Assembly: GCF_020745735.1 (NCBI RefSeq)
Contig: NC_083409.1
Location: 11,286,820-11,335,620, forward strand
DNA length: 48,801 bases
Direction: 5' to 3'
DNA from: Hemiscyllium ocellatum
Taxonomy: Eukaryota
In this document: one piece after another, positions 22,477-48,801 of the stretch
Numbering within the stretch: position 1 is the first letter of the stretch
Layout: each line of letters starts with the position of its first letter
Notes under the pieces: generated by a model
What the model saw: only the letters and a program-made list of their open reading frames with translations
Databases searched by the model: none
Told to the model about the DNA's origin: nothing
Position numbers and translations under genes: made by a program

Positions 22477-22789
22477 AATAGTTTATTCATGTCTTTAATG
22501 GATGGAAACCTGATGTTCTCACCTACTCTGACTTAAAGTGGTTCAGATTCCTTTCTACATCGGTCATCCTTGATTCTGTCAGCAATATCTAATTTGCTAG
22601 ATTCCCGCCCCCCACCCCCCAAAAAAAACCCAAATTCTTTGTTTACCAACAAGAAGGAAACATGGAAAGGTGTTTCATGTTTGATGCTGTTCTGGTGCCT
22701 TCTTTGTGATGAGTTCATGGTTTTTGCATTTGCTAACCTATTTCTACTGTTATTCAGATGGAATTATTCTTCTGGTGGCTGATTCATTT

Positions 22790-23430: not shown

Positions 23431-23437
23431 TCTGTTT

Positions 23438-26782: not shown

Positions 26783-27531
26783 AGGTTATCACATGGTGTG
26801 TTTGGTTTTATTATTTACCTTCCCCAGCAGTTTATGGAAGAACTAGGTGGCTTACTTGGCTACTTCAGACTGAAGAGCCAACCATGTTGTTGTGGGCTTG
26901 GAGACATATGGAGACCAGAACGGGTGGGGAAGACAGATGTTCTTACATAAGGGATGGCAGAGTTTTCAAAGTGGTGGCCCTGGGAAAGTGCTTGGTATTG
27001 CCAGGGGCATATGGGTGTTTTTAGTATTCATGGGATACCTTTTGGAAAATTTATTATTTCCTGTCTGTTTTCTGGAATGTTTTCAGTGTTGCTGGGGTGT
27101 CAGCATTTTAAAAATGTCCCTGAGAATGTGTTGGTATTTGGTATTTACATGGGCTCTCATGGAGGGTTTCAGCATTTATTGAGGCTCCCTGGCAGCGTGC
27201 TTTTAGAATCTTCATCCATGTGTTTGAATGTTTATTCAAATAGATGGGAATAACTATTTGTAAAAATGGAATCATAGCAGATGAAAGAAATTTAAAATTC
27301 TCCATGACATTTTTCATTTTCCCAAACTATATTTGTTCACTTTGCATTGAATCAACACTCTTGTGTAAATTAGATCAAGATTCTTTTAAGCGATGTTTAT
27401 TTCAGATATTTCTGGAAGTTTCCAAAGATGTCATCTTTGTTCCTAGACTTGAGTAAGGGTTGTGGTTTTTGTCCTAGTACCTAGTAGAATTTATGATAGT
27501 GGAGGTGCTGGTGTTGCACTGGGGTGGACAA

Positions 27532-27759
27532 AGTTAAAAATCACACAACACCAGGTTGGAGTCCAGCAGGTTTACTTGGAAGTACTGTACTAGCTTTCAG
27601 AGTGCTTCTCCTTCATCAGGTGGTTGTCAAGCAGGATCATAAAACAAAGGATGTTATGATCCTGGTCCACAGCTACCTGATGAAGGAGCAGCACTCTGAA
27701 AACTAGTGCTTCCAAATAAACCTTTTGGACTATAACCTGGTGTTGTGTGTTTTTTAACT
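27532..27759. mobile_element. Fold-back Penelope-derived non-autonomous element with two antiparallel hammerhead motifs
   Basis: Arms ~27532-27625 and ~27670-27759; inner IR caggatcataa/ttatgatcctg; cores CTGATGA-a-GGAG..CTCT-GAAA at 27591-27620(-) and 27677-27706(+). Confidence 0.8.
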
Positions 27760-28881
27760 CTGTAGAATTTCAGCAATGTTTGGAGAGGAGTATCTGTTGG
27801 TTGTAGTGTACTGATGGTGTTTCGCCTCTGGTTTTCTTCAGTTTCTTCCTGTCAACTGATGTAAATTTCAGTCTCAGCAGTCTACTGGTTTCCTCATTCT
27901 GTTGCAGTATTTAGAGTTCTCAGACATGTGCAGTTTTGGCGCGGTTTCACTTAACAGGCAATCATCCCGATAACATGAGCCACCTTTTTGAACAGCAGTG
28001 GGCCTTGTAATGGTGGTAGGTGATTTGAGATTAAATAGAGCTACCAGTGATGAAGGAGCAAGTCAGAAAGCGTGTGTGGAGGTGATGTGCCTAAGGTGCT
28101 GACTCATTTGTAGTGTCAGAAGTATCTTCGAAGTTTTCAAGTTGGCAGGGTTAGTGTTTGAAAATGTCAGACGGTATCTGAACCCAGAAGTATCTAGAAA
28201 ATGAAATGTGCCATCATAACCTTTTTAATGTAGAAAGATGATTATTCCTGTAAGGTGTTGACCCTGACCTCAATTTCTTTTTCTTGGAATGGAAATTTAT
28301 TTTCTCAATTTTCTTCCCTGTTCTCCCTATTCTGACTGAGAATTTGGCCAAGTAATCACTTTCTTTTTCTGAACCTTTATCATGTGTTGCCTGGCAAATT
28401 AGAGAAGGAATCAGAGGGCTGATCCATCCCACATGAGTGCACTTGGCAAAGGGGAATCACTGGATGGATTTTCTTCCCTTTTCTGCCGAAGTTGAAGCCG
28501 TTCCCTACAGCTTGGAGATTGATCAGTTGCAGAACACTTCAGCTCGGTGGTGTGTAATCGTATAATCGTATAACAGGGCCTGTGTCTGTTGTCTGGTATT
28601 GATCTGTGCAACTTCAGAAAAGAAAAGAAAACTTGTTTTAAATGGCACCGTTTACAATCATGGAAATTTCTTTATGTGACTTACAACCAGTGAACACTTT
28701 GTAGTTTATGAAATAGCAAATACAAAATACAATTTGAGCATATTAGGTTCATCAAAATAGCAAATTGTTGAATAGGATAGTCTGTTGAAATAAACATTGA
28801 CCAGAATGCTGAGGTCTTCTGCATCCGTCTCATCTGAAGGACACCATCAGTAAAATAGTGCAGTACACCCTCAGTACAGTA

Positions 28882-29101
28882 CAGGTCATTCTGCTATAAC
28901 TTGTATTTCGTTAACACAAATTTGCTATAACACGATCGACAAATTGGGGACATTGTTTCTAAAGCACGAACTCTGAAAACGTGTGTTGGCTGTAACCTGA
29001 TTACATCGCGAAGACTTTAAGTGCTGTTTCTAAAATGTGATTTTCCGATATCATGGGGGTTGGACAGCAATGCAACCATTATGTTATAGAAGAACTACCT
29101 G
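28882..29101. mobile_element. Tc1/mariner-pogo-like MITE
   Basis: TIRs caggtcattctgctataac / gttatagaagaactacctg (15/19 match); TA on the left flank. Confidence 0.65.
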
Positions 29102-29499
29102 GAGTGAAATGTCTGCCTGAGAGATCTGCTCAAATCTCTGGTGGGATTTGAACCGACAATCTGCTGTCTCAGGCTACACAACTGCTATCTGGTCAGTGAC
29201 GGACCTTTCCTGCTCTTAAAATAAGTGGCACAGTTGTGATGAAATACCCTTTTGGTGTGGTGTGCACATTATATCATATTGCTCCCATTCTGATCCTCTT
29301 TATTTGTCTAAATCAATAGAGAACCAACTAATTTCCTGAATTATCAACCCTTCCACATATTCTCATGTCAATAACTTTTATTCATTGCCCTGAAGGCCTC
29401 AATTGAAAGAGAACAGCGAAAGACCAAGCAGATGATCAGACTTTATTGTTTAAAATATTAAATCTCTTTGATTTATAGGATATTTGATTAAGCTACATG

Positions 29500-29659
29500 C
29501 AGAAGAGCCTCGATTATCTGGCATTCGATTATCTGAATTTCGGATTATCCAAAGTAGATCGTAAGATCCCGATGCTTGGCTAAACTGTATTACCCAGCAT
29601 TCAATTATCCAAACAAAACACTCCTTACCCATGTCGCTCGGGTAATCGAGGTTCCTCTG
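29500..29659. mobile_element. Tigger/pogo-like MITE
   Basis: TIRs cagaagagcctcgattatc / ggtaatcgaggttcctctg; TA on the right flank; internal gattatc repeats. Confidence 0.7.
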
Positions 29660-31609
29660 TAAATTGTTCCATTGTTTTAATGTTGTGCTTCCTTGTGAAT
29701 CTACATTATTACCTGAAAAGCACATGGCTGTTCTGGGTTGTGTTTAATTGTTTGCAGTGAACAGTACGTTCACAACAACATCAAGTGTCCCAAACTAATC
29801 GTCATCAAATTGATTTACCTTTCTCCCTCAGTTATTTTTTTAAAAATTGGAACTACCATTAAACCTTCAGAGTAGTCACAGCATATAACCGTGTGTCAGC
29901 TCTTTTCCAGTTCCTGATGAGAAACATCTCTGCCATGACACTAGCCAACCTCTAACTTTACAGTCACTTTCAAATAAATGTTTGTTCGAACCATTCTTTG
30001 TTTCTGTATCAAAGGCATTTGCTGTAACAGGCAATAATATTTGAAGTGCTCATTTATCCACCATTTTCCAAGGGTGGGTGGTGGAGGCTTTCCTTGGCTA
30101 ATTCTCTTTATTTTCACCATATAAGGGAAGTTGACCTGCCAGACACAAATTGGGCATTTGTGTCTGAGCATAAGTTGGACTTTCTCTGCAGATTGCAGCT
30201 GCAGTAAAATATCCCTATTGTGACCTTTTACCAACTGCTGTAGTTGCTTTATCAAACTCCCTGTTTGGTTATGTATATCTCATGTTCGGAAAAGGTTTCC
30301 ATGCTGTGGCTGTCTGTGACTATTGGACTCTTTGTGACACTTTGTGACAATCTATTTCTCTCTGTGACTCTCTGTGACTCTGTCTCAATCAGAATGACAA
30401 ATGTTACAATGTATTTATTGCACATTTCTGATAAATAATTTGTCTTGTGGAAAGGGAAGATGCATTTAACGTGAGGTGAACTGATAGAGTTGTGAAAAGA
30501 GGTCTGTAATGTAAGAAAAAAATGTCAATCACGGTTTAATTTTACTAATGTCAGTAAATGACTATTAACCATTAATTTACAGAAATGGAACATTTACATT
30601 GCGAGAAGGAAGAGAGGCGAGATAATGTAGGGACCAGGAAATGGGACTTGGCCAGATTAGCAGTTGTTTAATGAATGGTAGAGTCTCAGAAAAACAACCA
30701 AATATTTGCAGGGGCCAATATTTGGCCAAAGGACTGTTATAAAGAAAGAAATACTTACATCTAAATAGTGAGTTTTGTGGTTCTGGGGCATCTCAAAATA
30801 GCTCTCTGCCAATGAACTACTTTTTGAATTCTGGTCATTGTTCCAAGGGAGGTATTATGATGTCATAGTTCCAATTGTTCTGGCATAATAGCCACTTGGT
30901 GATCATGATAATCTGGATAATCAGATTCCCAGCAAAAACTTGGTTGAATATACAGCACAGACACCAAAAGAGCTGCTGGAAATCTGAAACAAAAGCAGAA
31001 ATTGCTAGAAAAGCTCAGCAGGTCTGGCAGCATCTTTGGATAGAAATCCGTGAACATTTCTGATTCAGTGACCTTTGTGGTTATGGGACATCTCAAAATG
31101 GCTCTCTGTGAATGAGGTATTTTTTGAATTCTGGTCATTGTTCCAAGGTAGGTATTATGATGCCATGGCTCAAATTGTTATGGCAAAATAACCGGGGAAC
31201 AAGGGCTTGGGCTTCTGCTGATGGTTACTGACATTATTTGATTTTGGTTCTGGTGTATACACATACAGATGCTCCTAGTTTGAACCTACTACTTACTACT
31301 TGCACATTCTTCACTGAAGCTACATTATCTCTCAGGACTGGAGAACATCCCACACTGGTGAGGGATTTGATGCTCGATGTTGGTATACCAAGCAGAATTC
31401 AATTGTTTATACAAAATGCTGTATTTTATTATCATTAAATAATGTCTACTTAATTTTACTTTTTTTGACCAAATGTCGTAATGCAAATAAACATTGAAAA
31501 TCCAAATCCAAAATAAATATTTGAGTTTCTGATTGCAAGCTTGGAATGTAATCTAAGCTGAATCTGAAAATCTGTGTTGTTGATTATCTTTGCTTTGCTT
31601 TTGTTTTAG

Positions 31610-31695
31610 GTGAGCTGACAAGATGTGGAGTAGAACATCTAACAAGTCAGTCCTACTAAATCAGAGACTGAAAAAGAGTCGAAGTACGAGGCAAG
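31610..31695 (+). CDS. CEP350: CEP350 first coding exon, copy 1 (ATG at 31623; MWSRTSNKSVLLNQRLKKSRSTRQ, ends phase 1)
   Basis: tttttag acceptor, 13-nt UTR, 73 coding nt, G|gtacag donor; assigned by position and size upstream of the clear CEP350 exons. Confidence 0.65.
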
Positions 31696-32692
31696 GTACA
31701 GTGGTGCTGATTTGCAAACTACTCCAGTTAGTTGTAGTGCCTTCAATCACTGTTGTGGTGACTATTGGGTTCAGTCATCAATACTATGTGGCAGATTAGA
31801 GATAATTTGATCCTATCGCCAAAGGACCGTTATAAAGAAAGAAATATTTACATTTAAATTGGGAGTTTTGTGGTTATGGGACATCTCAAAATGGCTCTCT
31901 GCCAATGAAGTATTTTTTGAATTCTGGTCATTGTTACAAGGGAGGTATTATGATGTCGGGCTCCGATTGTTATGACATAATAACCAGTTGATGTTAGTAC
32001 TGGATAATCAGATCCCCAGCAAAACCTTGATTGAATATACAGCACAAAAACCAAAAGAACTGCTGGAAATCTGAAACAAAAAAAAAATTGCTGGAAAGCT
32101 CAGTAGGTCTGGCAGCATCTGTGAAGAGAAATCCTTTAACATTTCTGGTTCAGTGATCTTTGTTATTATGGGACAGCACAAAATGGCTCTCTACGAGTGA
32201 GGTATTTTTTAAAATTCTGGTCATTGTTCCAAAGGAGTATTATGATGTTGCGTGTTGTGGCTCCAATTGTTATGTAATAAAAGCCAGGAGAACACGGGCT
32301 TGGGCTTCTGTTGATGCTTACTGACATTATTTGATTGTGGTTCTGGTGTATACACACACAGATGCTCTAGTTTGAACTTACTACATAATTCTTTTACATT
32401 CCTCACTGAAGCTAATTTATCGCTCAGGACTGGAGAACGTCCCACACTGGTGAAGGATTTGATTGTGCTGTAAGGCTCAACATTGGTATACAAAGCAGAT
32501 TTCAATTGTTTATTCAAAATGTTGTATTTCATTATCATTAAATAATGTCGACTTAATATTGCTGCTTTTGACCAAATTGAAAATCCAAATCCAAAATAAG
32601 TATTCGAGTTTCTGATTGCAAGCTTGTAATGTAGTCTAATCTGAATCTGAAAATCTGTGTTGTTGATTATCTTTGCTTTGCTTTTGTTTTAG

Positions 32693-32778
32693 GTGAGCTG
32701 ACAAGTTGTGGAGTCAAACATCTAACAAGTCAGTCCTACTAAATCAGAGACTGATAAAGATTCAAAATACGAGGCAAG
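32693..32778 (+). pseudogene. CEP350: CEP350 first coding exon, copy 2 (ATG changed to TTG at 32706)
   Basis: Same splice sites as copy 1; start codon lost. Confidence 0.65.
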
Positions 32779-34421
32779 GTACAGTGGTGCTGATTTGCAA
32801 ACCATTCCAGTTAGTTGTAGTGCCTTCAATCACTGTTGTGGTGACTATTGGGTCGAGTCATCAATGCTGTGTGGCGGATTAGAGATCATTTGATCCTAAG
32901 GCCAATGGACTGTCATAGAGAAAGAAATATTTACATTTAAATCGGGAGTTTTGTGGTTATGGGACATCTCAAAATGGCTCTCTACCAATGAAGTATTTTT
33001 TGAATTCTGGTCATTGTTACAAGGAAGGTATTATGATGTCGGGCTCCGATTGTTATGACATAATAACCAGTTGATGTTAGTACTGGATAATCAGATCCCC
33101 AGCAAAACCTTGATTGAATATACAGCACAAAAATCAAAAGAACTGCTGGAAATCTGAAACAAAAAAAAAATTGCTGGAAAGGGTCAGAAGGTCTGGCAGC
33201 ATCTATGGAGAGAAATCCGTAATCATTTATGGTTCAGCGATCCTTCCTCTGAACACTGCAACAATAACTCTTATTTCTCTCCATGTTGTGAGGAAGAGTC
33301 ACTGCTCCTGAAATGTTAACTGATTTCTCTCTACAGATGCTGCCAGACCTACTAAGCCTTTCCCGCCATGTCTGTTTGAAGATACAGTAAATGTTTTATT
33401 AACTGTCACCAATGGGACCAGGAGTGCTGGTTGATCAAATATTCCAGTGTCAAACAGACTGACATAATCAATGCTTAGTAATAGAAACCTAATGCAGGGG
33501 TATACACATCACTTTATTTGTCGTATAACTCACTGAAACAAGCATGCACATTTGCCTTAAATAAAACTTAATGGCAGAGTGCCTTCTCACTTGCAGCCTC
33601 AACTGACGACTCTGACACCATGAAAATGCGGTGACCTTCGAGTATTTCAGGTGTATAATTTTTGTTGGTTTATTAAGAGCAACAGTTCATAAAGTGCTGT
33701 CCCATGATTGTTTTTGGCTGCCTGGTTGAATTACTAGCACATATTGCAGTTCACCATCTACATTGCACAATTCAGTAGTGTGATGGAATACTTTCAACTT
33801 GCCTGGATGAGTGCAGATCTAGTAATACTGAAGAAGCTTGACACTATTTGGGACAGAACAGCTGAGGGCTAACACCACATGCACAAACCTGCACTTCCTC
33901 CACCTTCAACACTCAGCACCAATCTGTACCATTTGCTTAATACACTTACAGAAGCTCTCTAAGACTGACAGGGTGGCACCTACCAAAACCATTCCAAAAC
34001 GTTAATTCCATGCTGTACATTTCTACACATTCTATCTTCTGCATCATCGCCCTGCTCGCTTATCACCCTCTTGTTACTTAATTTCATTCTCTGCCTTAAC
34101 CCAGTCCTTCAGTTTCAAAGTTCCTATGGACAGATTTGTTTGTGGCTCCCGTTTACTTTTCCAACTCTTTTCTGCCCTGCCCTCCTCCATATCTCAGGTC
34201 ATTCTGTCTGCTGAACATTTTAGCTCCATACTTCCCAGTCTCACCCTGACATTTCCTGCTTCTTAGCTTCCAGTTTCCCTCAAAATATATGTTTGACACC
34301 CTGCATGTTTTCTAGTTCCCCTTTGATTCCTGCCTGGCTCTATCCTAAGAGTTTTTACTGCAGGAAACATACTATTTTAACTTGCATTGTGTTTGATTCA
34401 TTATTTTTCTTTCATCCCAAG

Positions 34422-34536
34422 TTGCGGCACATAGAAAACAGGCTTGAAGCTGTACCCACCACTACTGCAGTGACAGACACAGTGATGGATACTAAGAAAG
34501 CTTTGAGCAGTGCTACCCGAAAAATTAGCGGACTGG
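34422..34536 (+). CDS. CEP350: CEP350 exon LRHIENRLEAVPTTTAVTDTVMDTKKALSSATRKISGL (phase 0 to 1)
   Basis: Matches recalled human LRHIENKLEVAPTSTAVCDSVMDTKK; AG/GTAAGT boundaries. Confidence 0.9.
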
Positions 34537-35063
34537 GTAAGTGGAAGGAATACAAAATGAATTGTTCATGGGAATTAGATCAACAGTTACTCTTGACCTC
34601 AGGCTGGCCATTGTTAATCAGATAAAAGTAATAACCCTGGTGAAATTAAGTTAAGTGGTCGAGGGTCATGCACTGACATTTTGCAGTGTTTTGAAAGCAT
34701 TTGCAACAGAGACTGAGCCTATGGAATCTTTTCCTTCTCTCTAATTTATGGAGCTTCATTGGTAAGGCTTAGCAGGCAAAGTCAACCCTCCATTCCCTTC
34801 CTGAAGTGGTCATCTCCCGCTTCCATCTGTGTCAACACCTGTTGCCCATTGCAGATTCCCCCCAAATGTCTGGTTTATCACTTTGTGCTGGTCCACAGAA
34901 TTTGAGGGGGTGGGCGAGAAGAATTACCTTACCTTCTATCTCTTCTATATTCTGACAGCAACAGTTTAAGAGAAACTTGTGCTTACTAACCAATCCCATT
35001 GATTGTGATAATGGAATGCATGCTCCTTTTTTACTTCTTAAACTTTGTTTCTATTTCTATCAG

Positions 35064-35235
35064 ATGGAAGGTATCTGGAGGATTCTGTAGCCAGTGCTAC
35101 ATCTGTCAAGTCCAGTAGTCGCAGCAAATCACGGAAGGTCAACACCTCCCGTAGTCCCTTGCGATCTACCACCCTGGAAAGTAATATTATGAAGAGCAGT
35201 CGAGATGAATTCAGAGATCCATTAACTGTATATAG
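35064..35235 (+). CDS. CEP350: CEP350 exon DGRYLEDS...SRSPLRSTTLESN...EFRDPLTVY (phase 1 to 2)
   Basis: Matches recalled DGRYLDDS / SRSPLRATTLESN / EFREPL; canonical splice sites. Confidence 0.92.
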
Positions 35236-36222
35236 GTATGACCAGACGTATGTACCTTCTGTCGGTCACTTTCTGTTATCAATTCCTGAAGTTCTGCATA
35301 TATTAGAAACAACCAATACCTACTTGACAGCTTATAGTTGCACTCTTCTGACACTCAAATCACAACAGAGTCAACAGTGGCAGGATAGATACATAGAGGA
35401 TCCCAGGCTTCAGAATGCTTGTTCTTTCACACGTAATCTCATCCGAGGGTGTAATTTTAAAGATCTTGCACGCAAACATTTTCTGTGCTTATGACTTTTT
35501 ACAGTGTGTTCCAACTTGTGTACAAATTGACTTGCAGATGCACTCTAGAACAGAAACCATTTGTAAACTGGGGTCTGCCAGTAACCTGAAACATGGGCAC
35601 AATTTCAAATATGGAATAATAATAATAAAACGTGGTTACAAGAATCCTTTGCCGTGTAGCCCACCTTAGTTGATTCTATTTGGTTTTTATTCAATGCTCA
35701 CTGCTCTGTGAAACCAACTATTAATGGAGATACGTTAGTGAAGCTCAGTCTTGTGCAGTATTTAGATCATCATCAGTTCATCAGAGCCATTAAGCTTTTA
35801 TAAATTGGGACTGGAGTACAAAAATGAATGATGTTAAACCATCACAAATCACTGGTTAAGCTACAGTTAGAATGTTGTCCCCAGTATTGGGAACCCTAAT
35901 TCAGGAAGGACTTCAAGGCTGTGCACAGGAACCAGAAAGTGTTAACTTGACATTCGCTGATTATAGTAATCAAGAGAGATTCGATAAGTTGCTGATCATT
36001 CTGATTGAATAGTGGTTCAGAGGAGACCTCAAACCTGGTCAGGATGTTGGAAGAACTGCTTCTCCTGGTGGAAGAGACAGTAAGTAGATGGAAAATACAA
36101 AGTAAAGTTATGGAAGTCACCAAATTAATAAAGTTACAGTTTCATTTCAAGGGGAGGCGATGGCCGAGTGGTATTAGTGCCACGTAAATAATCCAGATAC
36201 TCAGTACATTTTAGTAAGCCTA

Positions 36223-36418
36223 CACTGGATAGGTCAGGCAGCATCAAAGGAGCAGGAGAATTGACATTTCCAGCATTAGCCCTTCTTCAGATTTATCCCC
36301 GAAACGTCAATTCTCCTGCTCCTTTGATGCTGCCTGACCTGCTGTGCTTTTCCAGCAACACATTTTGCAGCTCTGATCTCCAGCATCTGCAGTCCTCACT
36401 TTCTCCTGCACTGGATAG
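36223..36418 (+). mobile_element. Short Penelope pLTR-derived insertion with fold-back 5' end and 10-bp TSD
   Basis: TSD cactggatag at 36223-36232 and 36409-36418; 40-bp arms 36231-36270 / 36301-36340 with one mismatch; decayed hammerhead core on the minus strand at 36263-36290. Confidence 0.85.
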
Positions 36419-37168
36419 TCCAACATATGTTGAGCTGGGGTGAATTCTCCTTGCTGCTCATAGAAATTGGGTTCTTGGCATTTTTGGACTTCATCAAGGG
36501 GAAATTGTCATCAGTGAGCGTTTGCTTTATGTGGTGTATGTGATATTGGAAATCTTTAGCTCTTGTATAATTGTGTGCTGTCTGTTGATGTGCATGTGAT
36601 GTCGTTGTCCTTTATTTTTCCTCTGGCATCCCAGAGAGCTACCAGCCATACGGTGGCTAGTGTGATGGTAGTCACTGATGAATCCTCTTGATGACTCAAA
36701 TGGACTGGTAAACCCAAAGGACCTTTTAGGCCTTGGCGAGTATGTTGCGAAGCTGTTGTCTGGGTTGTCAGGTTTGGCAGGTTCATCAGCCTTTAGGCTG
36801 CTGTGTCCAGTCAGTACATTGTTGTTTAAATTTAAGAGTGGGAATGGTATTGTAGAAGATTGACTTTTGGGAATAGTAGAGGGAACATGGGCCCATCCAG
36901 TAAGGATGGCTGTTTATCCTCATGAAGGGCTTGTGCCGGAATCATGGAGTGTCCTCTTTGGATGCTGCCTGACATGCTGTGCTTTTCCAGTGCCACACTT
37001 TTTGACTCTGTTTATCCCTAATGCCAACTAAATCCTACAGATTGTTTAAAGCAGAGCTTCAGCAAACAGATACTTGATGGCATGAAATCTGCAGTGTTAA
37101 ATGGTTTAAGTGATGTCTCATTTTGGCAGTTGTCAACATTTGTGATTGTGTAAATTTTGTGCTTTCAG

Positions 37169-37377
37169 TGCTCACGGGAAGTCATCAAAGAAAAGCACAA
37201 GCTCTTCATTGTTCCATTCCACTGTGAGTTCCATGTCTCAGAGCCCTTTTCAGAATGACGCAGTGATAACATCCAGAGAGGGGACAAGGCAGCTGCGTGC
37301 TACTACCTCCACACCTTCACCTTCCCTAGTCGACATCAGTGTTACTGCAGCCAGGCCCTCCACATCCTCTGCTGCAG
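37169..37377 (+). CDS. CEP350: CEP350 Ser/Thr-rich central exon (phase 2 to 1)
   Basis: Open frame between tttcag and G|gttgga; position and phases fit the exon preceding the YLDAVEES exon; sequence similarity is low-complexity. Confidence 0.7.
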
Positions 37378-38277
37378 GTTGGAACTCTCGGAATCATGTT
37401 TTCTGTAACTATCATTTGTTTGGCCTAACCGGCCCCATTGGAGTAGTTTTTAAAAAAAATAAAACCCTGAGTAAGTAGACAACCAAGGTGAAGTGACAGG
37501 CATCGGGATGATTGGAAGAAATGGTGAGGTGCCACGTGACGTGGAAGCAGGTGCTTTTCCATTCAAGTGGTCGGATCCTGTCTGAGGAACATTAAGCAGA
37601 AGTAGGCTATTCAGCCTGTTGAGCCAGCCCCTGTCATTCAGTACAATCATGGCTGATCAGTGCTTCAGTATCGTTTTAGCCACCCTGTTCCCATCACCCT
37701 GTACACTATTGGAAATCAAATCCGTCAATTTTTACATAAAACATAATTGATGACTATGCTTTCACAACTCTCTGTGGCAGTGAACTCCAAAAGATTCATG
37801 ACCCTGAAGTAACAACAGAATTATCATCAGCTCAGACTTATGACATGGTCTCACTTATAAGTTGTCCCGCCAGTCCTAGACTCCCCAACGGGGGAAACGT
37901 TACCTACATCTACCCTTTAAGTATTTTGTAGATTTCAATGAAATCAATTCAAAATGCTGGAGAATGCAGGTCCAGTTTTCCCAATCTCTCTCCATGAGAA
38001 TGTCCTAGAAACAAGTCTGATGAACCTTTGTTGCATTCCTGATCATTCACCAGGACCCAAATACAATGATTGGGTTTGGATTTTCTGCACGCTTTGCTAT
38101 TTGTTTTATCCTGTGAATCTCATGAAAATTTCAATGTCTTGTCCCTTGTCGTTTTTTTACGCAGTTCCCGAACTTGTTTTGAATCCTGGAGAGGTGTGCA
38201 GTTAACCCTATGATCCCAATGCATTATTGAACGAATTGTAAAAGTTGGAATTACACTTTTCACTTTGGTTATTGCAG

Positions 38278-38441
38278 CCTCGATGCTCAGCTCCCCACCA
38301 AGTATCCAACACCACATGACTGCTCAACACACTTACTTGGATGCTGTGGAAGAGTCCATCCATCAGCTATCGGAGATAGACATGACCCGGGGAATAGCCT
38401 TTGCTCAACAAGAGACTGTGTCGTTGGCTCAGATCCTAAAG
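38278..38441 (+). CDS. CEP350: CEP350 exon ...HHMTAQHTYLDAVEESIHQLSEIDMTRGIAFAQQETVSLAQILK (phase 1 to 0)
   Basis: Matches recalled YLNAIEESVRQLSDVERVRGISLAQQESVSLAQIIK. Confidence 0.92.
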
Positions 38442-38983
38442 GTACAGGTCTATGCCTTGTGCTCTTTCAGAAATGCTTTTGTGAAATTGTCTTAAGTGAT
38501 AATGGCTGCGCTCGTTTTCCAAACCAAGCAACATTCTGAGCAACGTTCTTCAGTTAAATCAGGCAAAACGAAGATTATTCCAAAACTAGAGATTAAATTT
38601 ACTTACCCTTGGGTTGTGATTTAGGACAATGCCTAATCTTAAATGTGCAGATATTAGCATCGAACCTGTGCATGACTGCACTTTACAAGTTGACTGATAG
38701 AAGCAGGGCAAACTTGCCAAGTTTTCAAGAAATTTCAGCTTTCTAAAATTTGAGCCATTATGATGAGATTTGTGAGAAAATGTTTTTTTATTTATAAAGT
38801 TGCAATATTAAAATTAATTGATTAAAATCTTGTCATTTGTTACTCTTAAGATTTTGATGCCTTTGCATTTCAATTGTTACTCTCTCTCTCTCTGGACACT
38901 GCAAATTTAAATACCAGTTTTTCACAGAGCAGAGCAGTGGAATGTAGGGAGATGCTTCTTATTTAATCTTTGTTTGTGTCCAG

Positions 38984-39094
38984 GCCCAACAGCTGAGACA
39001 TGAGCACGACATAGCCCTGCTGAAACTGAAGGCCGAGCAGGAAGCTGCTGCAAGTCAGAGGCAGCTAGAGGAGGCCAGACAGAAAGCTGTACAG
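38984..39094 (+). CDS. CEP350: CEP350 exon AQQLRHEHDIALLKLKAEQEAAASQRQLEEARQKAVQ
   Basis: Matches recalled RHERDLALLKLKAEQEALESQRQLEETRNKAAQ; 111 nt, phase 0 to 0. Confidence 0.93.
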
Positions 39095-41938
39095 GTACTT
39101 GAACATGTAACAGGTGTCTGGAAATGCAAACAATTCAGTGTTGACTGCTTCTCACCGTGCAATAAGAATAAACAAATTATAATTATAAAGTGCCTTTAAC
39201 ATTGAAGGCAAACCTCTCCCCACCCCTGCCCTGTTCTGTTCCACCGGTAAACTGCCCCACTCAACAAAAGCACATTATGAAGATGTCATCATGAAAATCA
39301 ATGACAGGCCCAGACCATGGGGACAGTAGAAGGCACAGTTTTAGAAGCAAAAACATAGTTTGCTGGTGACACTCAGCAGCATCTGTGAGAAAAAAGAAGA
39401 GTTAACATTTCAGAGATTCTTTAGAAAACCTGGACAGATTGTAAGACCTTAAGGAGTGAATTCTAAAGACTGAGACACACAACTTGATGGAGTGGGATTG
39501 AACAAGATGACATCAGGAATGTAGATGATGAGGGAGGTTATAGGGCTGGAGCAGGTTACAGGAATGGGACAAAGGGAGGTCATGCTGACTTTGATTTGGG
39601 TGAGTAAGTTTGGAAGGTTGCAGGTTCCTGTGTTTTTACCTCTTGGAATTCTGTATCTTAAGAGTCAGAAAGCTTAATCAATATAATCCTTGCTATTGTT
39701 CTTAGTTACTTGCGCAAGCTTGCTCCTGTGTTTTAATGCCTGAATGACAAGTCGTGAATTTGCATTCTGTAATTCTGGTGATCTTGAGGTGGGCCATAAA
39801 GGCCGGCTTGCTGGCATAGCCCTCAACCCAAGAACAATTCAAAAAAAGGCTGCAGTCTATTTTAGTGTCTGATTGACAGTGGCTCCTTCAACTATTGACC
39901 ATCCAGGCACTGACATTTGTTTACTGAACCTGAATGTGTCTCTGCCTTTCTTCAAGAAGCTCCTTAAAAACTATGTTTTATCTGAGCACTTCTTATGTGG
40001 TTACTTGCCATATTCTGTAATCATGTTCCTGTCAACGTCCATGGGATGTTATAGTATAAAGGTGTGATACAAATGTCAGTTTATCTCATTGTGAATGCAG
40101 CTGCCTCTGAATGAAAACATTTTTGTTTCAAGCCCCATGCTTCGACTTGAATGGAAGCCGACCATACGCACTCAATCTAGAGCAGGACTGCTGCATTCTT
40201 AGAGATGACACGTTTCAGGCAAGACGTTAAAGCAAGTTCCCATCTTCTATTCCAGTGGATAGAGAAGATCCGTTTTAATACTTGAAGAAGTCTAAGGGGG
40301 TTCTCCTGTTATCCTGCTCAATATGAATTCCTCACTATTGTAGATGCTGCCTTTTTAGGAGCTTGTCAAAAGGCCCTTCTTGGAGAGCGTGACTATATTT
40401 TGAAAGAACTCCATTGGCTGAGAAGGACTTTGCAATGACCTGAAGATGTCAATGACACCGTGAAAACTTTAGCTTCTTTAAACGGCAGTTTTTGCTTCAG
40501 ATTGTCCCCATCTGAGGAACACAGCGCAGAACTGCCTCTGATGCCATATTTGCGATTTGTTTGGTAGAACCCACACAGAGAGAGTAGAACCATGAAAATA
40601 AGGAGTATCCACTTGACCAATAAAGATCATGGCAATAAAAATAGACTGCAGCTTTTTTTGAATTGTTCTTCAGTTGAGGACTATGCTAGCAAGCAATGGC
40701 CGACCGAGAGATCACCAGAATTGTGGAATGCATATTCACAACTTGTCATTGGGATATAGGAACAAGAGTAGAACAATCAGCCTCTTAATTCTCTTATGCA
40801 ACTGAGTTTAAATTTGTTTATGGCGAAAAGCCCTTTCGCTTTTCAACAGCCTTATCCCTCAAAACACATGCAAAATAAAAGTATCATCTCATCATAGCAA
40901 TTTGCTGGAAAAAAAGCATTTAAAATAATAAAGTATCTCAAAATATTTCAAAAAAGCATCAAATGGAAAAGTTTATGCTAAGTCATGCAAGATATTCAAA
41001 ATTTTGGTGAAGTTGGCTTTTAAGGAGTGTTTAAAGGAGGAAATGGAGCTGAGAGATGAACAGGTCTAGGAAAGCATTATGATGGAATACTCCCCACTTA
41101 CCTGGAGGAGTGCAATTCTGGTGACACTCAGGAAGCTCAACATCATCCATTACAAAACATCAGCATGATTTGAATCATGTCCACCACCTTAAGTGCCTAT
41201 TCCCTCTGTCATCAGTATACTGTACAACAAGGTGCACCATCTATAAGACGCTCTGCAATACCTCATTGAAGGCTCCTTTGACAGACCTAGACTCATGACC
41301 TATTCTGTCTGGAAGAACAGGGCGGTAAATGCCTGGGAATGCCGCATATAATTATGACTTTAAAATATATTGCTCTTCCTTTGCTGCCTACAATGGTCTG
41401 ACATACATTGGGAGTACCTTGCAGCCACATGGGTTGCCGTGGTTTAAGAAGATCACTAACTTTCACCTTTTAATGCCAGTTGTGGTTGGACAGTCAGTGT
41501 CAGGGATTTCTACATCCTGAGAATGAATTAAATAATTAATTCTTGATTTTTCGGTTCTGAATGATCTGGTTTTTAGTTTTAAGGTTGAATACATCTCCCC
41601 ATCATGGAAACAATCTCGCAATACCATGACCAGGTTAAATAAAAAAAAACCAAAGAACTGCAAATACTGGAAATCAAAAAAACAAAATCACACGATGACT
41701 AGGTTACTGTGCTTATATGTGACATTAGAGGAGAGGGAAAGGCTTTAAAGCTTGATTGTAAAACAGAAGCCGTGTCAGTGAGCTTATGTTGCATGATGAA
41801 ACATGATGCAAGTTGAATGCAGTGTGCTTACTGGATCATAAGTCAATTTCACATTGCATTTTAATAGTGCTCTGTCTTTTTTTTAAAGTATCTGAATTAT
41901 CAATTGCTGGACATGAAAACCTCTCTTTGTGTTCTCAG

Positions 41939-42070
41939 GCATGTGCAGAAAGTCTGCAGCAGTTTGTACAGGTTCGCCAAGAGATGCTGCAAGAGTCTAC
42001 AACTAAAATGATCACTCAGCAGGTGAAACTTGCAAGGCTGATGGCTGATACAGCACGTCAGGTTACAGAG
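41939..42070 (+). CDS. CEP350: CEP350 exon ACAESLQQFVQVRQEMLQESTTKMITQQVKLARLMADTARQVTE
   Basis: Matches recalled HAESLQQVVQ...ARLTTDAARQICE; 132 nt, phase 0 to 0. Confidence 0.9.
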
Positions 42071-42794
42071 GTACTTTCTTCTAGTGTACTTGGCAAGGTG
42101 GCCCTTTCCCCCAGTCATGCTGAAGAGCCAGTACTTTCTGGAGTTTTGAAGGAATTTCTCTCATACAATTGCTGCATTGAGTTAATTGTCACTGCAGTTT
42201 GAAATTATTTCATTCCTCGAATGTAGTAAACTGTCAAGGAAGAGCAGGGCAAAGCTTAACAGCATACCATATGATATTAAGAAAGATGACCAACTGCTTG
42301 GTCAAAGAAATAGGTGAGATAGAATGTTGGAAAGGAAGAAAATGTTACTATTTGAACTGCGTTAGGACAGAATTGCATAGCTGATGACTATGCAGCTGAA
42401 AGCTTCAGTGCTGAGCTGGGGTGGATGAGCTCTGTAGTAGGTTTCCTTTATTCATGGAGGGAATTGCCTTTGTATTCATGACTGCATAGCTGTGATTGAT
42501 TGATAAATGCCATCGGAATCAATACATAAACACCCCATTTTCGCTCCTTTTCACAACGTCTGAGATCTTTTAACACATTGTATCATGCTCCCCTTTGGAG
42601 AAAAGAAAGCATGAAATGGAGCCTCAAGGAATCAGAGCAGGAGTAGGGATTCGTTCCCTTGAGCTTGCTCCCCCATTCTATCAGATCATGGCTGGGCCAA
42701 ACCAGGCCTCAACTTATCTTTTCTGCTTGATCCTCATAGCCCTCAACTGCTTAATATTTCAAAAATCTATCTACCCTCTTTTAAAGTAATTTGA

Positions 42795-42900
42795 TATAGA
42801 ATCATAGAATCCCCACTGTGTGGAAACAGGCCCTTCGGCTGAGCAAGTCCACACCCACCTTCCGAAGAGTAACCCACCAAACCCATTCCCCTACCCCATT
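42795..42900 (-). mobile_element. HE1/HER1-type 3' tail fragment
   Basis: atagaatcatagaatccccactgtgtggaaacaggcccttcgg, the same tail family as 26354 and ~45150. Confidence 0.7.
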
Positions 42901-43019
42901 TAGCTGTCACAATTTTTTGGGCGAGAGAATTCCAGCCATTCACTGAGAGAGAAAAAAAAATCTTTATTTTTTTTAAAATTGAATGTTCCCTTCTGTAATG
43001 TCCCCTGGGTTGAGACTTC

Positions 43020-44340
43020 ACTGGTACTCGAACATCTAGTCAACATCAACCCCTGTCAAGCTCCTCAGAACATTGTTTCCATAAGATCACCCGTTATTTG
43101 TCCAGACTCTATTGAATAATGACCTAACCTATTCTTGACAGACCAACCTTTTCATCCTTGAAGCAACTAAATGAATCTTTTTTTGAGTGGCCTCCAATGC
43201 TAGTTTATCCTTTCTTAAATATGAGAGCAAACATTGTATACAGTACTCCAAGTGAGGTCTCAGCAACAGCCATTGTGGTTAACCAATCCTCAGTCCATGC
43301 TAATACATGACCCCCGATGCCGTGAGCTCCTATCTTGTGCAGTTAACTTTTATATAGCACCTTATCAAATGCATTTTTAAAATACAAATACAGAACATCA
43401 TCAGATTCTCCTTTATCAGCCCTACTTCTTATCTCCTTAATGAACTCTAGCAAATATGTCAAATATAGTTCCCTTTCACAAAATCCAGTCTACCATGTTT
43501 AATGATAAGCTTTTCCAAATGTCCTGCTATTTCTTCCTTTAATAATCAACTCTGCTGTTCTGCCAAAACAGATATTAAACTAACTTTCCTGATTTCTGTC
43601 TCCCTCCCTTCTTGAACAGGCGCATCAATCCACTGGAAGCTCCCTGTATCCACTGATTCGGGAATAATTCAATTGATGCCTTGAATATCTCTGCAGCCAG
43701 TTTCCTCCAAAAATGTTTGATACAGGCCATTAGGTCCTGTCTGCCTTTAATCCTATTAGTTTGTCATTACTTTGTCCCTTGTGACAAAGACTGTTGTAGC
43801 ATTTTTCCTCCCACAAATACCTTGCCTTTTGCTATCTTTGGGATGATAACGGTATTCTCCTCCATGAAGACCAATGTAAAATATTGATTTAAATTATCTG
43901 CTGTTTTCCCTGTACACATTATCAATTCCCGAATCAGAATCTCCAAGGGTTTGATGCTCACTTTAGCTACTCACTTTTTACATACCTGTAGAAACTTTTG
44001 CCATTCGTTTTTGTATCTTGTCAATTTAATTTCATGATCATTTTTTTTCCTTTTTCATCCTCTGCTGCCGTGTCGTTCTTTTCCTTGTGGGTACTGTCCT
44101 TGACTGCCTTTGTTACCCACGGGTGGTTCACCTTTCTCTTAGAGTTCTCCTTTCTGCCTCAAATAAAATTTTGCTCAGCGTTATGAAAAAAGCCCATCAT
44201 ATCCCAGTGACGGAGCATGTGAATTTTTTAACACTGGATGCTTCAATTTTAATGATGTTCTCATTGGTTTTTGCTGTTTCACAGAAGAGCTGGGAGCATC
44301 TGGAAAGGAGGTGGCAGCTGATTCAGGATTAGTTCCAGAA
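43020..44340 (-). mobile_element. Decayed CR1 LINE
   Basis: ADNLNQYFTLVF-like ORF2 motif (43767-43961) and CR1 RT-region remnants. Confidence 0.6.
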
Positions 44341-44522
44341 TTAATTTGAATACTTGCAAAAATAAATTCCTTGCAACATTGTGAGAGCAGGGGTCTAGCC
44401 AAATAGCTATTCCAAAGAGGCGGCACACATGCGATGGGTTGAGTAGGGGCCTCTGATTTCAAAAGCAAGATGTGATCCAAGTTGTCTTCTAACCTGTGCT
44501 GTGCTAATTCTTGCTGGTTTAG

Positions 44523-44683
44523 ATGACTGAGTTGGCATGTGCGCAGGTTGCAGCAGGATCTCTGACTGCCACAAACCCACCTCATGGAACAGCTCCTGTG
44601 CCAGTGACAGTGCTGCTGGACCAACAGAGGCAGCAACATTCAGACTTCATGAACCAACTTCGAACCAGAACTGAACCTGACAG
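44523..44683 (+). CDS. CEP350: CEP350 exon MTELACAQ...LLDQQRQQHSDFMNQLRTRTEPDR (phase 0 to 2)
   Basis: Matches recalled MAEL...DHQRQHLPDFVKQLRTRTETDR; ttag / AG|gtaag boundaries. Confidence 0.9.
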
Positions 44684-44844
44684 GTAAGATTTTTACACTG
44701 CCCCAAACCTGATCAATAATATTCAGCTTCTTGGCTTAATAACCTAAGGCTTGTTGCTTGATGCGATGCACAGTTTTTGATGTTTTCGCTATTATCTGTG
44801 ATCAGGAGAGGCAGGATCAATGCACTCAGTCTTTTAGGAAAAAG

Positions 44845-45195
44845 GAGGTGGCTCAGTGTTTAACACTGCTGCCTCACAGCGCCATGCACCCAGGTGACTC
44901 CAGCCTCAGATGACTGTCCGTGTGGAGTTTGCACATTCTCCCGTGTCTGCATGGGTTTCCTCTGAGTGCTCTGGTTTTCTCCCACCATCCAAAGATGTGC
45001 AGGTGAGGTGAATTGGCCGTGTTAAATTGCCCATAGTGTTCAGGGATGTGCAGGTTTGGTGCATTAGTCAGGGGTAAATGTTGAGTAATAGTGTTAAGGG
45101 ATAGGTTTGGTTGGGATACTCTTCAGAGGGTTGATGTGGATTTGTTGGGCCGAAGGGCCTGTTTTCCACACTGTAGGAATTCTATTCTATTCTAT
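44845..45195 (+). mobile_element. HE1-type V-SINE
   Basis: tRNA-like head, V-core gtgtggagtttgcacattctcccgtgtctgc, tail ending in (attct)n. Confidence 0.85.
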
Positions 45196-45461
45196 GATCA
45201 GAGTAATTTTGGGGGTCTGACAGAATCCTGGTATTCAGAAGGCACTCTGTTAGTTAAAATAGTATTGTGCACTCTTACCTTCTGCAGCAATTTGAGGTAG
45301 ACTGCTCTGTACAGTTTCTTCAAACATTTTGTTCTTGAACCAGTCAGGGACTTGGTAATATGATTGATTAATGAGTTCAAAATTAAAGACCCTTTGGTAA
45401 GATTCAATGCAGCACAATAGAATTTAGCTTTAGGCGAAGGAATTTGGTTCTTGAACTAGTA

Positions 45462-48395
45462 TAGAACATAGAAAAATACAGGCCCTTCGGCCCTCGATGT
45501 TGCGCCGACCAAAGTCTACCTAACCTACACTAGCCTAATAACCTCCATATGCTTATCCAATGCCCGCTTAAATGACCATAAAGAGGGGAGAGTTCACCAC
45601 TGCTACTGGCAGGGCATTCCATGAACTCACTACCTGCTGCGTAAAGAATCTACCCCTAACATCTGTCCTATACCTACCACCCCTTAATTTAAAACTGTGT
45701 CCACTAGTAACAGCTAACTCCATTAACAGAAAAAGGTTCTCAGTGTCTACCCTATCTAAACCCCCTAATCATCTTGTACACCTCGATCAAATCTCCCCTA
45801 AACCTTCTTTTCTCCGATGAGAACAGCCCCAAGTGCCTCAGCCTTTCCTCATACGATCTTCCTACCATGCCAGGCAACATCCTGGTAAACCTCCTCTGCA
45901 CTCGTTCCAATGCCTCCACATCCTTCCTATAGTATGGTGACTAAAACTGCACACAATACTCCAGATGAGGCCGCACCAGAGTCTTATACAACTGCAACAT
46001 GACCTCAGCACTCTGGAACTCAATTATCTACCAATAAAGCCCAGTACACCATATGCCTTCTTCACAGCTCTATTTACCTGGGTGGCAACTTTCAGAGATC
46101 TGTGTACATGGACACCAAGATCCCTCTGCTCATCACACTACCAAGTAGCCTACCATTAGCCCAGTAATCCATCTTCTTGTTACTCCTACCAAAGTGAATG
46201 ACTTCACACTTAGCTACATTGAACTCCATTTGCCACCTTTCTGCCCAGCTCTGCAACTCATCTATATCCCGCTGTAACCTGCCACATCCTTCTTCGCTGT
46301 CCACAACTCCACCGACTTTCGTGTCATCGCAAACTTGCTCACCCAGCTTTCAAGCCCTCCTCTAGATCATTTATAAAGATGACAAACAGCAATGGTCCCA
46401 AAACAGATCCTTGTGGAACACCGCTAGTAACTGCACTCCAAGATGAACCTATTCCATCAACTACTACCCTCTGTCTCCTTCCAGCCAGCCAATTCCTAAT
46501 CCAACCTCTAATGCACCCTCAATGCCATACCTTCGTAGTTTTTGCATTAGCCTACCATGTGGTACTTTATCGAACGCCTTGCTAAAATCCATATACACCA
46601 CATCTACAGCTTTACCCTCATCCACCTCCTTAGTCACCTTCTCAAAGAACTCAATAAGGTTTGTGAGGCACGACCTGCCCTTCACAAAACCATGCTGACT
46701 ATCCTTGATCACATTATTCCTATCCAGTTGTTCATAAATCCTATCCCTTACAATTCTCTCTAAGACTTTGCCACAACAGAAGTGAGACTCACTGGCCTAT
46801 AGTTACTCGGGCTATCCCTACTCCCCTTCTTGAACAAGGGGACCACATTCGCTATCCTCCAGTCTTCTGGCACTATTCCCGTAGACAATGACGACATAAA
46901 AATCAAGGCCAATGGCTCTGCTATCTCCTCCCTAGCTTCCCAGAGGATCCTAGGATAAATGCCATCAGGCCCAGGGGACTTCTCTATTTTCATCCTTTCC
47001 AGTATTCCCCAGACCTCTTCCCTACATACCTCAAGGCCATCCATTCTAATCGCTTGTGACTCAATATTCACATCAGCAATAGTGTCCTGTTCCTGAGTGA
47101 ATACTGACGAAAAGTATTGATTTAGTGTCTCTCCAACCTCCTCCGCCTCCACGCACAACTTCCACTACTATCCTTGACTGAACCGATACCTACCCTAGTC
47201 ATCCTTTTATTCCTGACATACCTATAGAAAGCCTTTGGGTTTTCCCTAATCCTACCAACTAAGGACTTTTCATGTCCCCTTCTCGCTGCTCTTAGCTCTC
47301 TCTTTAGATCCTTCCTGGCTACCTTATAACTCTCAATCGCCCCAACTGAACATTCACACCTCATCTTTACATAGGCCGCCCTCTTCCCTTTCACAAGGGA
47401 TTCCAATTCCTTATTAAACCACGGCTCCCTCACAAGACCTTTACTCCCTGCCTGACTGGTACATACTTATCAAGGACACCCAATAGCTGTTCCTTGAACA
47501 ATCTCCACATATCATTTGTGTTCTTCCCTTGAAGCCTATTTTTCCAATCCACGCATCCTAAGTCATGCCTCACCACATCATAATTTCCCTGCCCCCAGCT
47601 ATAACTCTTGCCCTGCAGTGCACACTTATCCCTCTCCATCACTAAAGTAAAAGTCACCGAGTTGTGGTCACTGTCCCCGAAGTGTTCACCTACCTCCAGT
47701 CTAACACCTGGCCTGGTTCATTACCTAGAACCAAATCCAGTATAGCTTCACCTCTTGTTGGCCTGTCTACATATTGTGTCAGGAAACCCTCCTGCACATA
47801 TTGGACAAACACCGACCCATCTAACGAACTCGAGCTATAGCTTTCCCAGTCAATATCTGGGAAGTTAAAGTCCCCCATAACAACCACCCTGCTACTTTCA
47901 CTCTTCTCCTGAATCATCCTCGCAATACTTTCCTCTACTTCTCTCAGACTATTGGGAGGCCTGTAGAAAACTCCTAACAGGGTGACCTCACCTTTCCTAT
48001 TTCTAACCTCAGCCCAAACTACCTCACATGGCAAGTCTTCCTCCATCGTCCTTTCCACCCCTGTAATACTATCCTTGACAAGCAATGCCACACTACCCCC
48101 TCTTTTACCCCCATCTCTGACCCTGCTAAAACATTTAAACCCTGGAACCTGCAACAGCCATTCCTGCCCCTGTTCTACCCACGTCTCTGTAATGGCCACA
48201 ACATCGAAGTCCCAGGTACCAACCCACGCTGCAAGTTCACCTACCTTATTTCTTATACTTCTGGCATTGAAGTATACACACTTCAAGCCACCTTTCTGTT
48301 TACAGGCACCTCCTTCGAGATCGATGCCTTGTTCCTAACCTCCTACACTCAAGGTCCTGCACCATAAAGCTACAGTCCAGGTTCCCATGCCCCTG
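45462..48395 (-). mobile_element. CR1/HER1-like LINE, ORF2 (APE endonuclease + RT), frameshifted
   Basis: EN: YFNARSIRNK, ITETW, GVFYRPPN, VMGDFNFP, LDLVLGN; RT: NYRPVSLTS, QHGFVKGRSCLTNL, DFSKAFDKV; catalytic FADD frameshifted (tttgcgatgacac ~46325); tagaacatag tail. Confidence 0.93.
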
Positions 48396-48728
48396 CGCGC
48401 TTATATAAGAAAAATAACCTTCCCAGGTAACCTAGCGCGACACCAGCTTCCGGGTCTGCTAGGCGCTTAAAAAAAAAACTATAAATTTTAACTGTTAAAA
48501 AACACTAACTGGACTATACCCGCGACTTCAAAAAACGCCACCAGACAGCCGTTACTGCTCCGCGAGAGAGTCTAAAGTTAAAGGCACAGTCACAAGGGTC
48601 TAAGTAATAGTGAGCTAAATGGGAATGGGACGAGAGGTTAGAATGTTTAAAACAGAAGAACCTATCAGTTATTTCATAATTCTCAACAATGTACATTTAT
48701 TTATAAAAGAAAATACACGATGAAAAGG

Positions 48729-48747
48729 TGCCAACAGGGGGGCAGAG
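48729..48747 (+). promoter_or_regulatory. CTCF-motif match
   Basis: tgCCAACAGGGGGCAGagc resembles CCACCAGGGGGCGC. Motif only. Confidence 0.5.
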
Positions 48748-48801
48748 CTAAAGGAATTGTGGGTGACAGCAAATTGAAAGAAAAGATATACAAAACTGCA
48801 A

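Follow-up and report, generated by a model that had tools for sequence, protein, structure and literature searches.

CEP350 (CAP350) is a centrosome and microtubule-anchoring gene. In the epaulette shark Hemiscyllium ocellatum, a series of exons resembling part of this gene lies in a neighbourhood that also contains an immunoglobulin exon. Seven of these exons can be joined into an open reading frame. The locus raises the question of whether this short copy of CEP350 is a working gene or a duplicated fragment that has merely stayed open. The window that was analysed is the whole stretch of 48,801 nucleotides (NCBI RefSeq assembly GCF_020745735.1, contig NC_083409.1, positions 11,286,820 to 11,335,620 of the forward strand), and all positions given here are counted from its first letter. 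A search for literature linking CEP350 with shark genomes or with immunoglobulin loci found none.

The seven exons (E1 to E7, Table 1), spanning 34422-44683, are spliced into 1,064 nt with zero stops, or 354 codons. The splice sites are canonical in 14 of 14 cases, with AG acceptors and GT donors. Within each exon, the sole open frame is the one used in the join. E2 ends in phase 2, E3 starts in phase 2, and 1,933 bp lie between them. The exon ends, the translation and the window sequence bear out what the first-pass annotation had described in these respects. Only two indels are present in E1 to E7, of 6 and 18 nt, and both are multiples of three. The window contains no ambiguous bases (N). 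A GT donor follows E7 at 44684, and the next exon is past the 3' end of the window. The open frame leaves the window at this end, so the seven exons are not the whole gene.

Table 1. Features of the short CEP350 copy and its surroundings (positions in the window)
Feature	Positions	Strand	Description
Immunoglobulin light-chain-type constant (C1-set) exon	2434-2742	+	Pfam C1-set E = 4e-14
Tandem repeat	30725-33245	+	Unit ~1,085-1,093 bp, 2.3 units, 88-94% identical; contains two copies of the first coding exon
First coding exon, copy A	31610-31695	+	AG acceptor, ATG at 31623, 24 codons + 1 nt (phase 1), GT donor
First coding exon, copy B	32693-32778	+	Splice sites as in copy A; start ATG changed to TTG
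E1	34422-34536	+	Parental residues 40-77; 32/36 aligned residues identical
E2	35064-35235	+	Parental residues 78-134; 51/56 identical; ends in phase 2
Intron between E2 and E3	35236-37168	+	1,933 bp; replaces parental residues 135-1229
E3	37169-37377	+	Parental residues 1230-1306; 56/69 identical; two deletions (2 and 6 codons) that keep the frame
E4	38278-38441	+	Parental residues 1307-1361; central coiled coil begins here
E5	38984-39094	+	Parental residues 1362-1398; 35/37 identical
E6	41939-42070	+	Parental residues 1399-1442; 36/44 identical
E7	44523-44683	+	Parental residues 1443-1495; 52/53 identical to the H. ocellatum parent

The exons were mapped by tblastn and pairwise alignment, with the full-length CEP350 of Hemiscyllium ocellatum (3,288 aa) as the reference. 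E1 and E2 correspond to shark CEP350 residues 40-134, and E3 to E7 correspond to residues 1230-1495. Neighbouring exons are contiguous in parental coordinates except at the E2/E3 junction. Because all other consecutive exons abut exactly, 1,095 parental residues can be counted as absent at this junction (35235/37169). The first-pass annotation had put the gap at roughly 1,100 residues, and the measured value agrees with it. Identity to the parent is ~86% over the seven joined exons and 88-89% over E1 and E2, in which the conserved N-terminal segment (LRHIEN...DGRYLEDS...EFRDPL) is present. The copy does not encode a contiguous CEP350 protein of ~3,000-3,300 residues that includes region 135-1229. 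When whole parental proteins were used in tblastn, no coding remnants of residues 135-1229 were found in 35236-37168 or in the rest of the window. No CAP-Gly domain (PF01302) block was found within the window; the corresponding region would lie past its 3' end.

The intron that replaces the missing block was explored through a repeat search. It contains a fold-back repeat at 36231-36340 and a partial relative at 36954-37010. The fold-back repeat was considered as a hammerhead ribozyme and this was rejected, as it gave no Rfam match at the gathering threshold and weak generic hairpin matches only. An extension of the parental exon past 35235, to which tblastn adds 8-9 residues (a VPS match), was also rejected because the similarity is far below the 86% of the genuine exons. 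A match to protein P0002 was disregarded as a false match to a repeat protein.

Upstream of E1, the first coding exon of CEP350 is found twice within a tandem repeat. In the repeat search, families D1 to D8 are spaced 1083-1103 bp, and by self-BLAST 30725-32158 is 87.8% identical to 31818-33242. Copy A matches parental residues 1-24 with 62-67% identity (tblastn), and copy B differs from copy A at 7 of 86 nt. Neither permissive tblastn nor two degenerate DNA patterns at 3 mismatches recovered the 44-nt second coding exon, which encodes parental residues 25-39. A BLOSUM sliding-window scan of both strands of 22000-34421 also gave no match to it. Because this exon is missing, the ancestral ATG is no longer in frame with E1. 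Translation of the first coding exon joined to E1 would end 8 codons on, at the stop codon 34445-34447, and no in-frame route leads from the ancestral start codon into E1 to E7. Insertion of copy B between copy A and E1 would restore the phase (1 + 86 nt), but when the sequence is read by eye this frame meets a TAA inside copy B, and such a rescue was rejected.

The lost exon shifts the frame read from the ancestral ATG and may be a disabling lesion, but no stop interrupts the 354 codons of E1 to E7, and translation could begin at Met61. The first-pass annotation had singled out an in-frame ATG in good context at 34485. Its context is indeed good, with G at -3 and +4, and it is the sole ATG in E1. 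It is not a new start codon, being the conserved codon for parental Met61. A short upstream ORF stops 38 nt before it, and the arrangement of the sequence makes reinitiation at ATG 34485 possible.

The intact CEP350 that was to be sought elsewhere does exist. Full-length proteins of 3,242-3,321 aa are annotated in Hemiscyllium ocellatum and in its relatives Chiloscyllium punctatum, Chiloscyllium plagiosum, Stegostoma (zebra shark), and Rhincodon (whale shark). The hemiscylliid parents are XP_060686055.1 (H. ocellatum), XP_072429495.1 (C. punctatum), and XP_043555873.1 (C. plagiosum). The CEP350 gene of C. punctatum covers 130 kb, and for 10 kb to its left and right there are no further called genes. 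Block 135-1229 is present in the CEP350 of every shark, ray and chimaera examined, including the three hemiscylliid species. Nine exons of the short copy were found to be homologous to those of parental CEP350 exon for exon, with equal phases where these can be inferred. The copy differs from parental CEP350 in the absence of residues 25-39 and 135-1229, in having an immunoglobulin exon as a neighbour, and in evolving threefold faster.

The short copy carries residues that are otherwise found only in hemiscylliids. In the tree, it is the sister to the H. ocellatum and C. punctatum parents, with supports of 99/98 and 93/92. Its branch length is 0.13 versus ~0.04 in the parents, or approximately three times as long. 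The copy thus branches on the hemiscylliid stem. It predates the split of Hemiscyllium and Chiloscyllium and is not very young. The only annotated relative of the copy that the protein searches turned up is a 124-aa model from C. plagiosum, "centrosome-associated protein 350-like" (XP_043540234.1/XP_043540235.1), on a 1.5-kb contig. It is 89% identical over E4 and E5. Two of its exons are known, E4 joined to E5, beyond which the model continues into intron sequence. It has six derived substitutions in common with the short copy when both are compared to all parental CEP350s, and three more sites are altered in both to different residues. Because of the shared derived substitutions, it is placed in the same family as the short copy.

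The constraint on the copy was explored at the protein level. Residues unchanged across 13 cartilaginous fishes were taken as invariant sites. The copy has changes at 18 of 175 invariant sites versus 21 of 158 variable sites (Fisher p = 0.40), a negative outcome for purifying selection on CEP350-invariant residues. The copy is without CEP350-type site constraint and no longer evolves like CEP350. E4 is an example: of its 54 residues, 10 have changed, and six of these changes hit positions that are invariant in all 14 parents. Across the ten shark parents compared, the equivalent exon varies little or not at all. Divergence is heterogeneous across the exons (chi-square p = 0.03), E7 having 1 change in 53 residues versus 10 in 54 for E4 (p = 0.008). 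This unevenness is not predicted by uniform decay and may be due to gene conversion. As a protein-level proxy, the comparison of invariant and variable sites agrees with neutrality.

The odds of an open frame were estimated as well. In a neutral simulation, the probability of no stop was ~0.13 at the observed protein divergence. The neighbouring tandem repeat has one indel per 10-18 substitutions, none of them a multiple of three. At this rate, ~60 neutral substitutions give 3-6 expected frameshifts, with fewer expected in exons, which are without homopolymer runs. The rough joint neutral probability for stops and indels is 0.01-0.05, a post hoc value for a locus that was chosen for its openness. 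By this rough measure, the frame is somewhat better kept than under neutral expectation, and its openness is mildly surprising only, not compelling.

The short copy is probably a duplicated, internally deleted, non-processed passenger pseudogene in which the frame is not yet broken, with a rough probability of 0.6. A DNA-level partial duplicate of CEP350, with its introns kept, arose on the bamboo and epaulette shark stem. The exons for residues 135-1229 would have been lost as one block, in frame by chance (phase 2 to phase 2), and the 44-nt second coding exon would have been lost too. The copy now lies 29 kb downstream of the immunoglobulin light-chain constant exon, and the antibody-gene neighbourhood has probably carried it along as a passenger. 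It has since changed about three times faster than the working gene, regardless of the residues that CEP350 needs. The copy probably makes no useful protein.

Several features are common to the short copy and to non-processed pseudogenes in segmental or tandem amplifications. These are the introns, the partial content, the internal deletion, the relaxed constraint, and the broken start link. Introns are retained around all seven exons and the two first-exon copies, all GT-AG, and an intact parent is present. Unlike typical non-processed pseudogenes, the seven joined exons have no stop or frameshift. The first-pass annotation had weighed a young deleted duplicate against a short paralog kept open. 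A deleted duplicate is what the copy appears to be; it is not very young, since it predates the split of Hemiscyllium and Chiloscyllium and has a relative in C. plagiosum. The paralog proposal was right that the copy is lineage-specific and that it connects the N-terminal tip with the central coiled coil. Its further claim, that the frame is maintained in a functional paralogue, is not shown, as the invariant sites are ignored, the second coding exon is lost, and the neutral probability of no stop is ~0.13.

The next best explanation is a working, lineage-specific short CEP350-like gene, which is possible and on balance unlikely. It would be transcribed, and translated from Met61 (ATG 34485) or after reinitiation, into a product in which the N-terminal tip is fused to the central coiled coil. 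The frame would be under selection, with most residue changes tolerated, as in coiled-coil or disordered proteins, or even favoured. The 354-codon open frame, the intact splice sites, and the exclusively in-frame indels are consistent with this, as is the rough neutral probability of 0.01-0.05. The context of ATG 34485 is strong and there is no second ATG in E1. In addition, the C. plagiosum RefSeq model splices together the E4 and E5 exons of a sister copy. However, changes are not depleted at residues invariant in the 13 cartilaginous fishes, and the branch is threefold longer than those of the parents. The missing exon has put the ancestral start into another frame, and one of the duplicated first exons is without an ATG. 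Moreover, no annotated protein from a hemiscylliid had this architecture among the best 8,000 candidates scored in each of three size ranges (152-483, 571-1818, and 1430-4550 aa), which together cover 152-4550 aa apart from 484-570 aa. If the frame were truly maintained, a huge centrosomal scaffold protein would here have been reduced to a short coiled-coil gene and multiplied beside immune genes, which would be rare. Nothing in the present measurements requires a maintained frame.

The antibody-gene neighbourhood allows a further reading. The C1-set exon is on the same strand as the short copy and precedes its first exon by 29 kb, and the spread of the copy may be tied to amplification of antibody-gene clusters. 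It is improbable that a frame-preserved family of such short CEP350 genes has multiplied with light-chain clusters in bamboo and epaulette sharks and is expressed as short coiled-coil proteins. Such proteins would be without the microtubule-binding middle, and selection would be on the frame and not on CEP350 residues. As a product, a new factor linked to B cells or interfering with the centrosome would be conceivable. If the copy is instead a passenger pseudogene, as is preferred here, it marks how shark antibody-gene neighbourhoods acquire and multiply nearby gene pieces. It would also be a warning to annotators that "CEP350-like" open frames in such genomes do not equal a working gene.

An assembly artefact is very unlikely. 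A collapse or misjoin in 35236-37168 would mean that a normal CEP350 locus had lost ~100 kb, and the interspersed repeats in this interval could mislead an assembler. However, 46-47 of 354 aligned residues differ from the parental proteins of the same family, which indicates that this is not the parental locus. The window is also free of N, the 5' end is independently rearranged, and a copy that shares derived substitutions with this one is present in a separate assembly, that of C. plagiosum. The weakest explanation, a genuine CEP350 orthologue in a lineage that naturally lacks the block, can be dismissed, since full-length CEP350 with the block is found in three hemiscylliid species and in all sharks, rays and chimaera examined.

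The CEP350 sequence in this window appears to be a lineage-specific, intron-containing, internally deleted duplicate that lies beside an antibody gene and is decaying without CEP350-type constraint (probability about 0.6). The 54 residues of its fourth exon, E4, were compared with 1.84 billion representative proteins and matched full-length CEP350 at approximately residues 1250-1390 of ~3,000-3,300. The source records name these proteins as CEP350 (ray, lungfish, and gar). When these CEP350s and then shark CEP350 were searched against the whole window by tblastn, the only matches were seven exons, E1-E7, and two upstream pieces. The exons were rebuilt from positions 34300-48801 of the window and mapped on the parental Hemiscyllium ocellatum CEP350 (3,288 aa).

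Coding features of the window, with parental residues numbered as in H. ocellatum CEP350
Feature	Position	Strand	Remarks
Immunoglobulin light-chain-type C1-set constant exon	2434-2742	+	Pfam E = 4e-14
First coding exon, copy A	31610-31695		ATG 31623 kept
First coding exon, copy B	32693-32778		TTG in place of ATG
E1	34422-34536	+	AG acceptor, GT donor; E1-E2 = residues 40-134
E2	35064-35235	+	AG acceptor, GT donor
E3	37169-37377	+	AG acceptor, GT donor; residues 1230-1306
E4	38278-38441	+	AG acceptor, GT donor; residues 1307-1361
E5	38984-39094	+	AG acceptor, GT donor; residues 1362-1398
E6	41939-42070	+	AG acceptor, GT donor; residues 1399-1442
E7	44523-44683	+	AG acceptor, GT donor; residues 1443-1495

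Joined, E1-E7 give 1,064 nt and 354 residues with zero stops, and in each exon the used frame is the sole open one. The seven-exon, stop-free GT-AG frame of the first-pass annotation is thus borne out. Consecutive exons abut exactly in parental coordinates; therefore, 1,095 parental residues are absent between 35235 and 37169, and the ~1,100 aa given for this gap in the first-pass annotation was correct. The 1,933-bp E2/E3 interval and the rest of the window have no detectable trace of these residues.

Substitutions that set the copy apart from both hemiscylliid parents were counted. Of 175 positions that do not vary among 13 elasmobranch parents (sharks and rays), 18 are substituted in this way, and of 158 variable positions, 21 (Fisher p = 0.40). 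Among the ten shark parents compared, E4 shows little or no variation. The E4 of the copy has 10 changes in 54 residues, and six of these hit residues invariant in all 14 parents. Since changes are equally frequent at invariant sites and E4 is heavily changed, CEP350-type purifying selection is gone from the copy. The exons diverge unevenly (chi-square p = 0.03), with 1 of 53 residues changed in E7 versus 10 of 54 in E4 (p = 0.008, post hoc). E7 agrees with H. ocellatum CEP350 at 52/53 residues, one of them specific to H. ocellatum. This mosaic can possibly be attributed to gene conversion from the parent, and the likeness of E7 hints at a Hemiscyllium-like source genome.

It is also conceivable, though rather unlikely, that a short coiled-coil protein is translated under frame-only or novel selection. 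Neutral decay was simulated by mutating the CDS randomly, with a transition bias of 2, until the observed 38-48 residue changes were reached. No stop arose in ~13% of trials, and all 28 splice-site bases would be expected intact in ~20%. Relative to the parent, the exons have just two indels, of 6 and 18 nt, and E3 contains both. In the adjacent non-coding tandem repeat, 112 substitutions were counted against 11 indels, and 74 against 4, with no indel a multiple of three. At this ratio, 3-6 frameshifts would be expected per ~60 substitutions, and fewer in the exons because these lack homopolymer runs. The rough joint probability of an unbroken frame under neutrality, 0.01-0.05, is suggestive and not decisive, since the locus was picked for being open and much of the divergence is common to a sister copy. 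No hemiscylliid protein joining the N-terminal tip to the central coiled coil was found among the best 8,000 candidates per size range searched (152-483, 571-1818, and 1430-4550 residues). The proteins returned were parental CEP350s, as well as fragments, of many vertebrates. This weak negative fits loci that are not called protein-coding. A literature search turned up no paper about shark copies of CEP350.

The first coding exon (parental residues 1-24) is doubled within a tandem repeat at 30725-33245 (unit ~1.09 kb, 2.3 units, 88-94% identity). Between copies A and B, 7 of 86 nt are different, which is close to the flank divergence. Both end in phase 1 and E1 starts in phase 0; the parental bridge is a small 44-nt exon (residues 25-39). 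No match to this small exon came from tblastn with the E cut-off raised to 1000, from BLOSUM scanning of 22000-34421 on both strands, or from degenerate DNA patterns allowing three mismatches across the whole window. Copy A joined to E1 can be read for eight codons before a stop at 34445-34447. Splicing by way of copy B would correct the phase, but a TAA lies inside that exon (read by eye). The ATG at 34485, pointed out in the first-pass annotation, is present in frame and is the sole ATG in E1. It is the conserved parental Met61 codon and not a new start. It sits 38 nt past the stop, so reinitiation there might conceivably occur.

An assembly artefact is very improbable; the window contains no N. 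A genuine orthologue naturally lacking the block is excluded, as full-length CEP350 is annotated in H. ocellatum and in all sharks, rays, and chimaera examined. These normal proteins have 3,242-3,321 residues in H. ocellatum, Chiloscyllium punctatum, C. plagiosum, zebra shark, and whale shark, and the C. punctatum gene is 130 kb long. The CEP350 of the window is an extra copy.

The duplicate is ~86% identical to hemiscylliid parents over the seven exons and has residues exclusive to hemiscylliid CEP350. Maximum-likelihood analysis places it as sister to the H. ocellatum and C. punctatum parents (supports 99/98 for the clade and 93/92 for the parents together), on a branch of 0.13; for a parent, the branch covering this period is ~0.04. 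At a few sites, older states lost in both hemiscylliid parents are kept (the Val of EAVPT, the Ile of HDIALL, and some of the first exon), which fits a copy that arose early on the hemiscylliid stem. For C. plagiosum, RefSeq has a 124-residue model, "centrosome-associated protein 350-like", with 89% identity to E4-E5. Six derived changes absent from all parents are common to this model and the copy, and at three other sites both have changed, each in its own way. A second genome assembly thus contains one sister copy or more, and ~60% of the E4-E5 divergence arose before the two copies split. This sister is the sole independent confirmation here of a CEP350-copy family.

The immunoglobulin exon shares the strand of the CEP350 copy and lies 29 kb upstream of its first exon, separated from it by retroelement remnants and an inverted duplication. 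The remnants, at 5219-6931 and 19530-19925, weakly match reverse transcriptase, zf-RVT, and GIY-YIG; a GIY-YIG match is typical of Penelope-like elements. The inverted duplication (~900 bp, 84% identity) is at 9354-10238 and 20533-21423. A fold-back interspersed repeat around the motif GGTCTGGCAGCATC occurs at 36231-36340, with related pieces at 36954-37010, 33162-33377, 30993-31072, and 32095-32156. One copy in the E2/E3 intron forms a near-perfect hairpin, with 40-nt arms that are 98% complementary and a loop of 30 nt. At gathering score, Rfam assigned this repeat neither to the hammerheads nor to any other family, and gave only weak generic hairpin matches. Directly downstream of the immunoglobulin exon is a short tandem repeat (3520-3871, period ~41-43 bp, copies 97% identical). 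Strongly C-rich blocks are present at 6-8 kb and 46-48 kb (GC skew -0.47 and -0.42).
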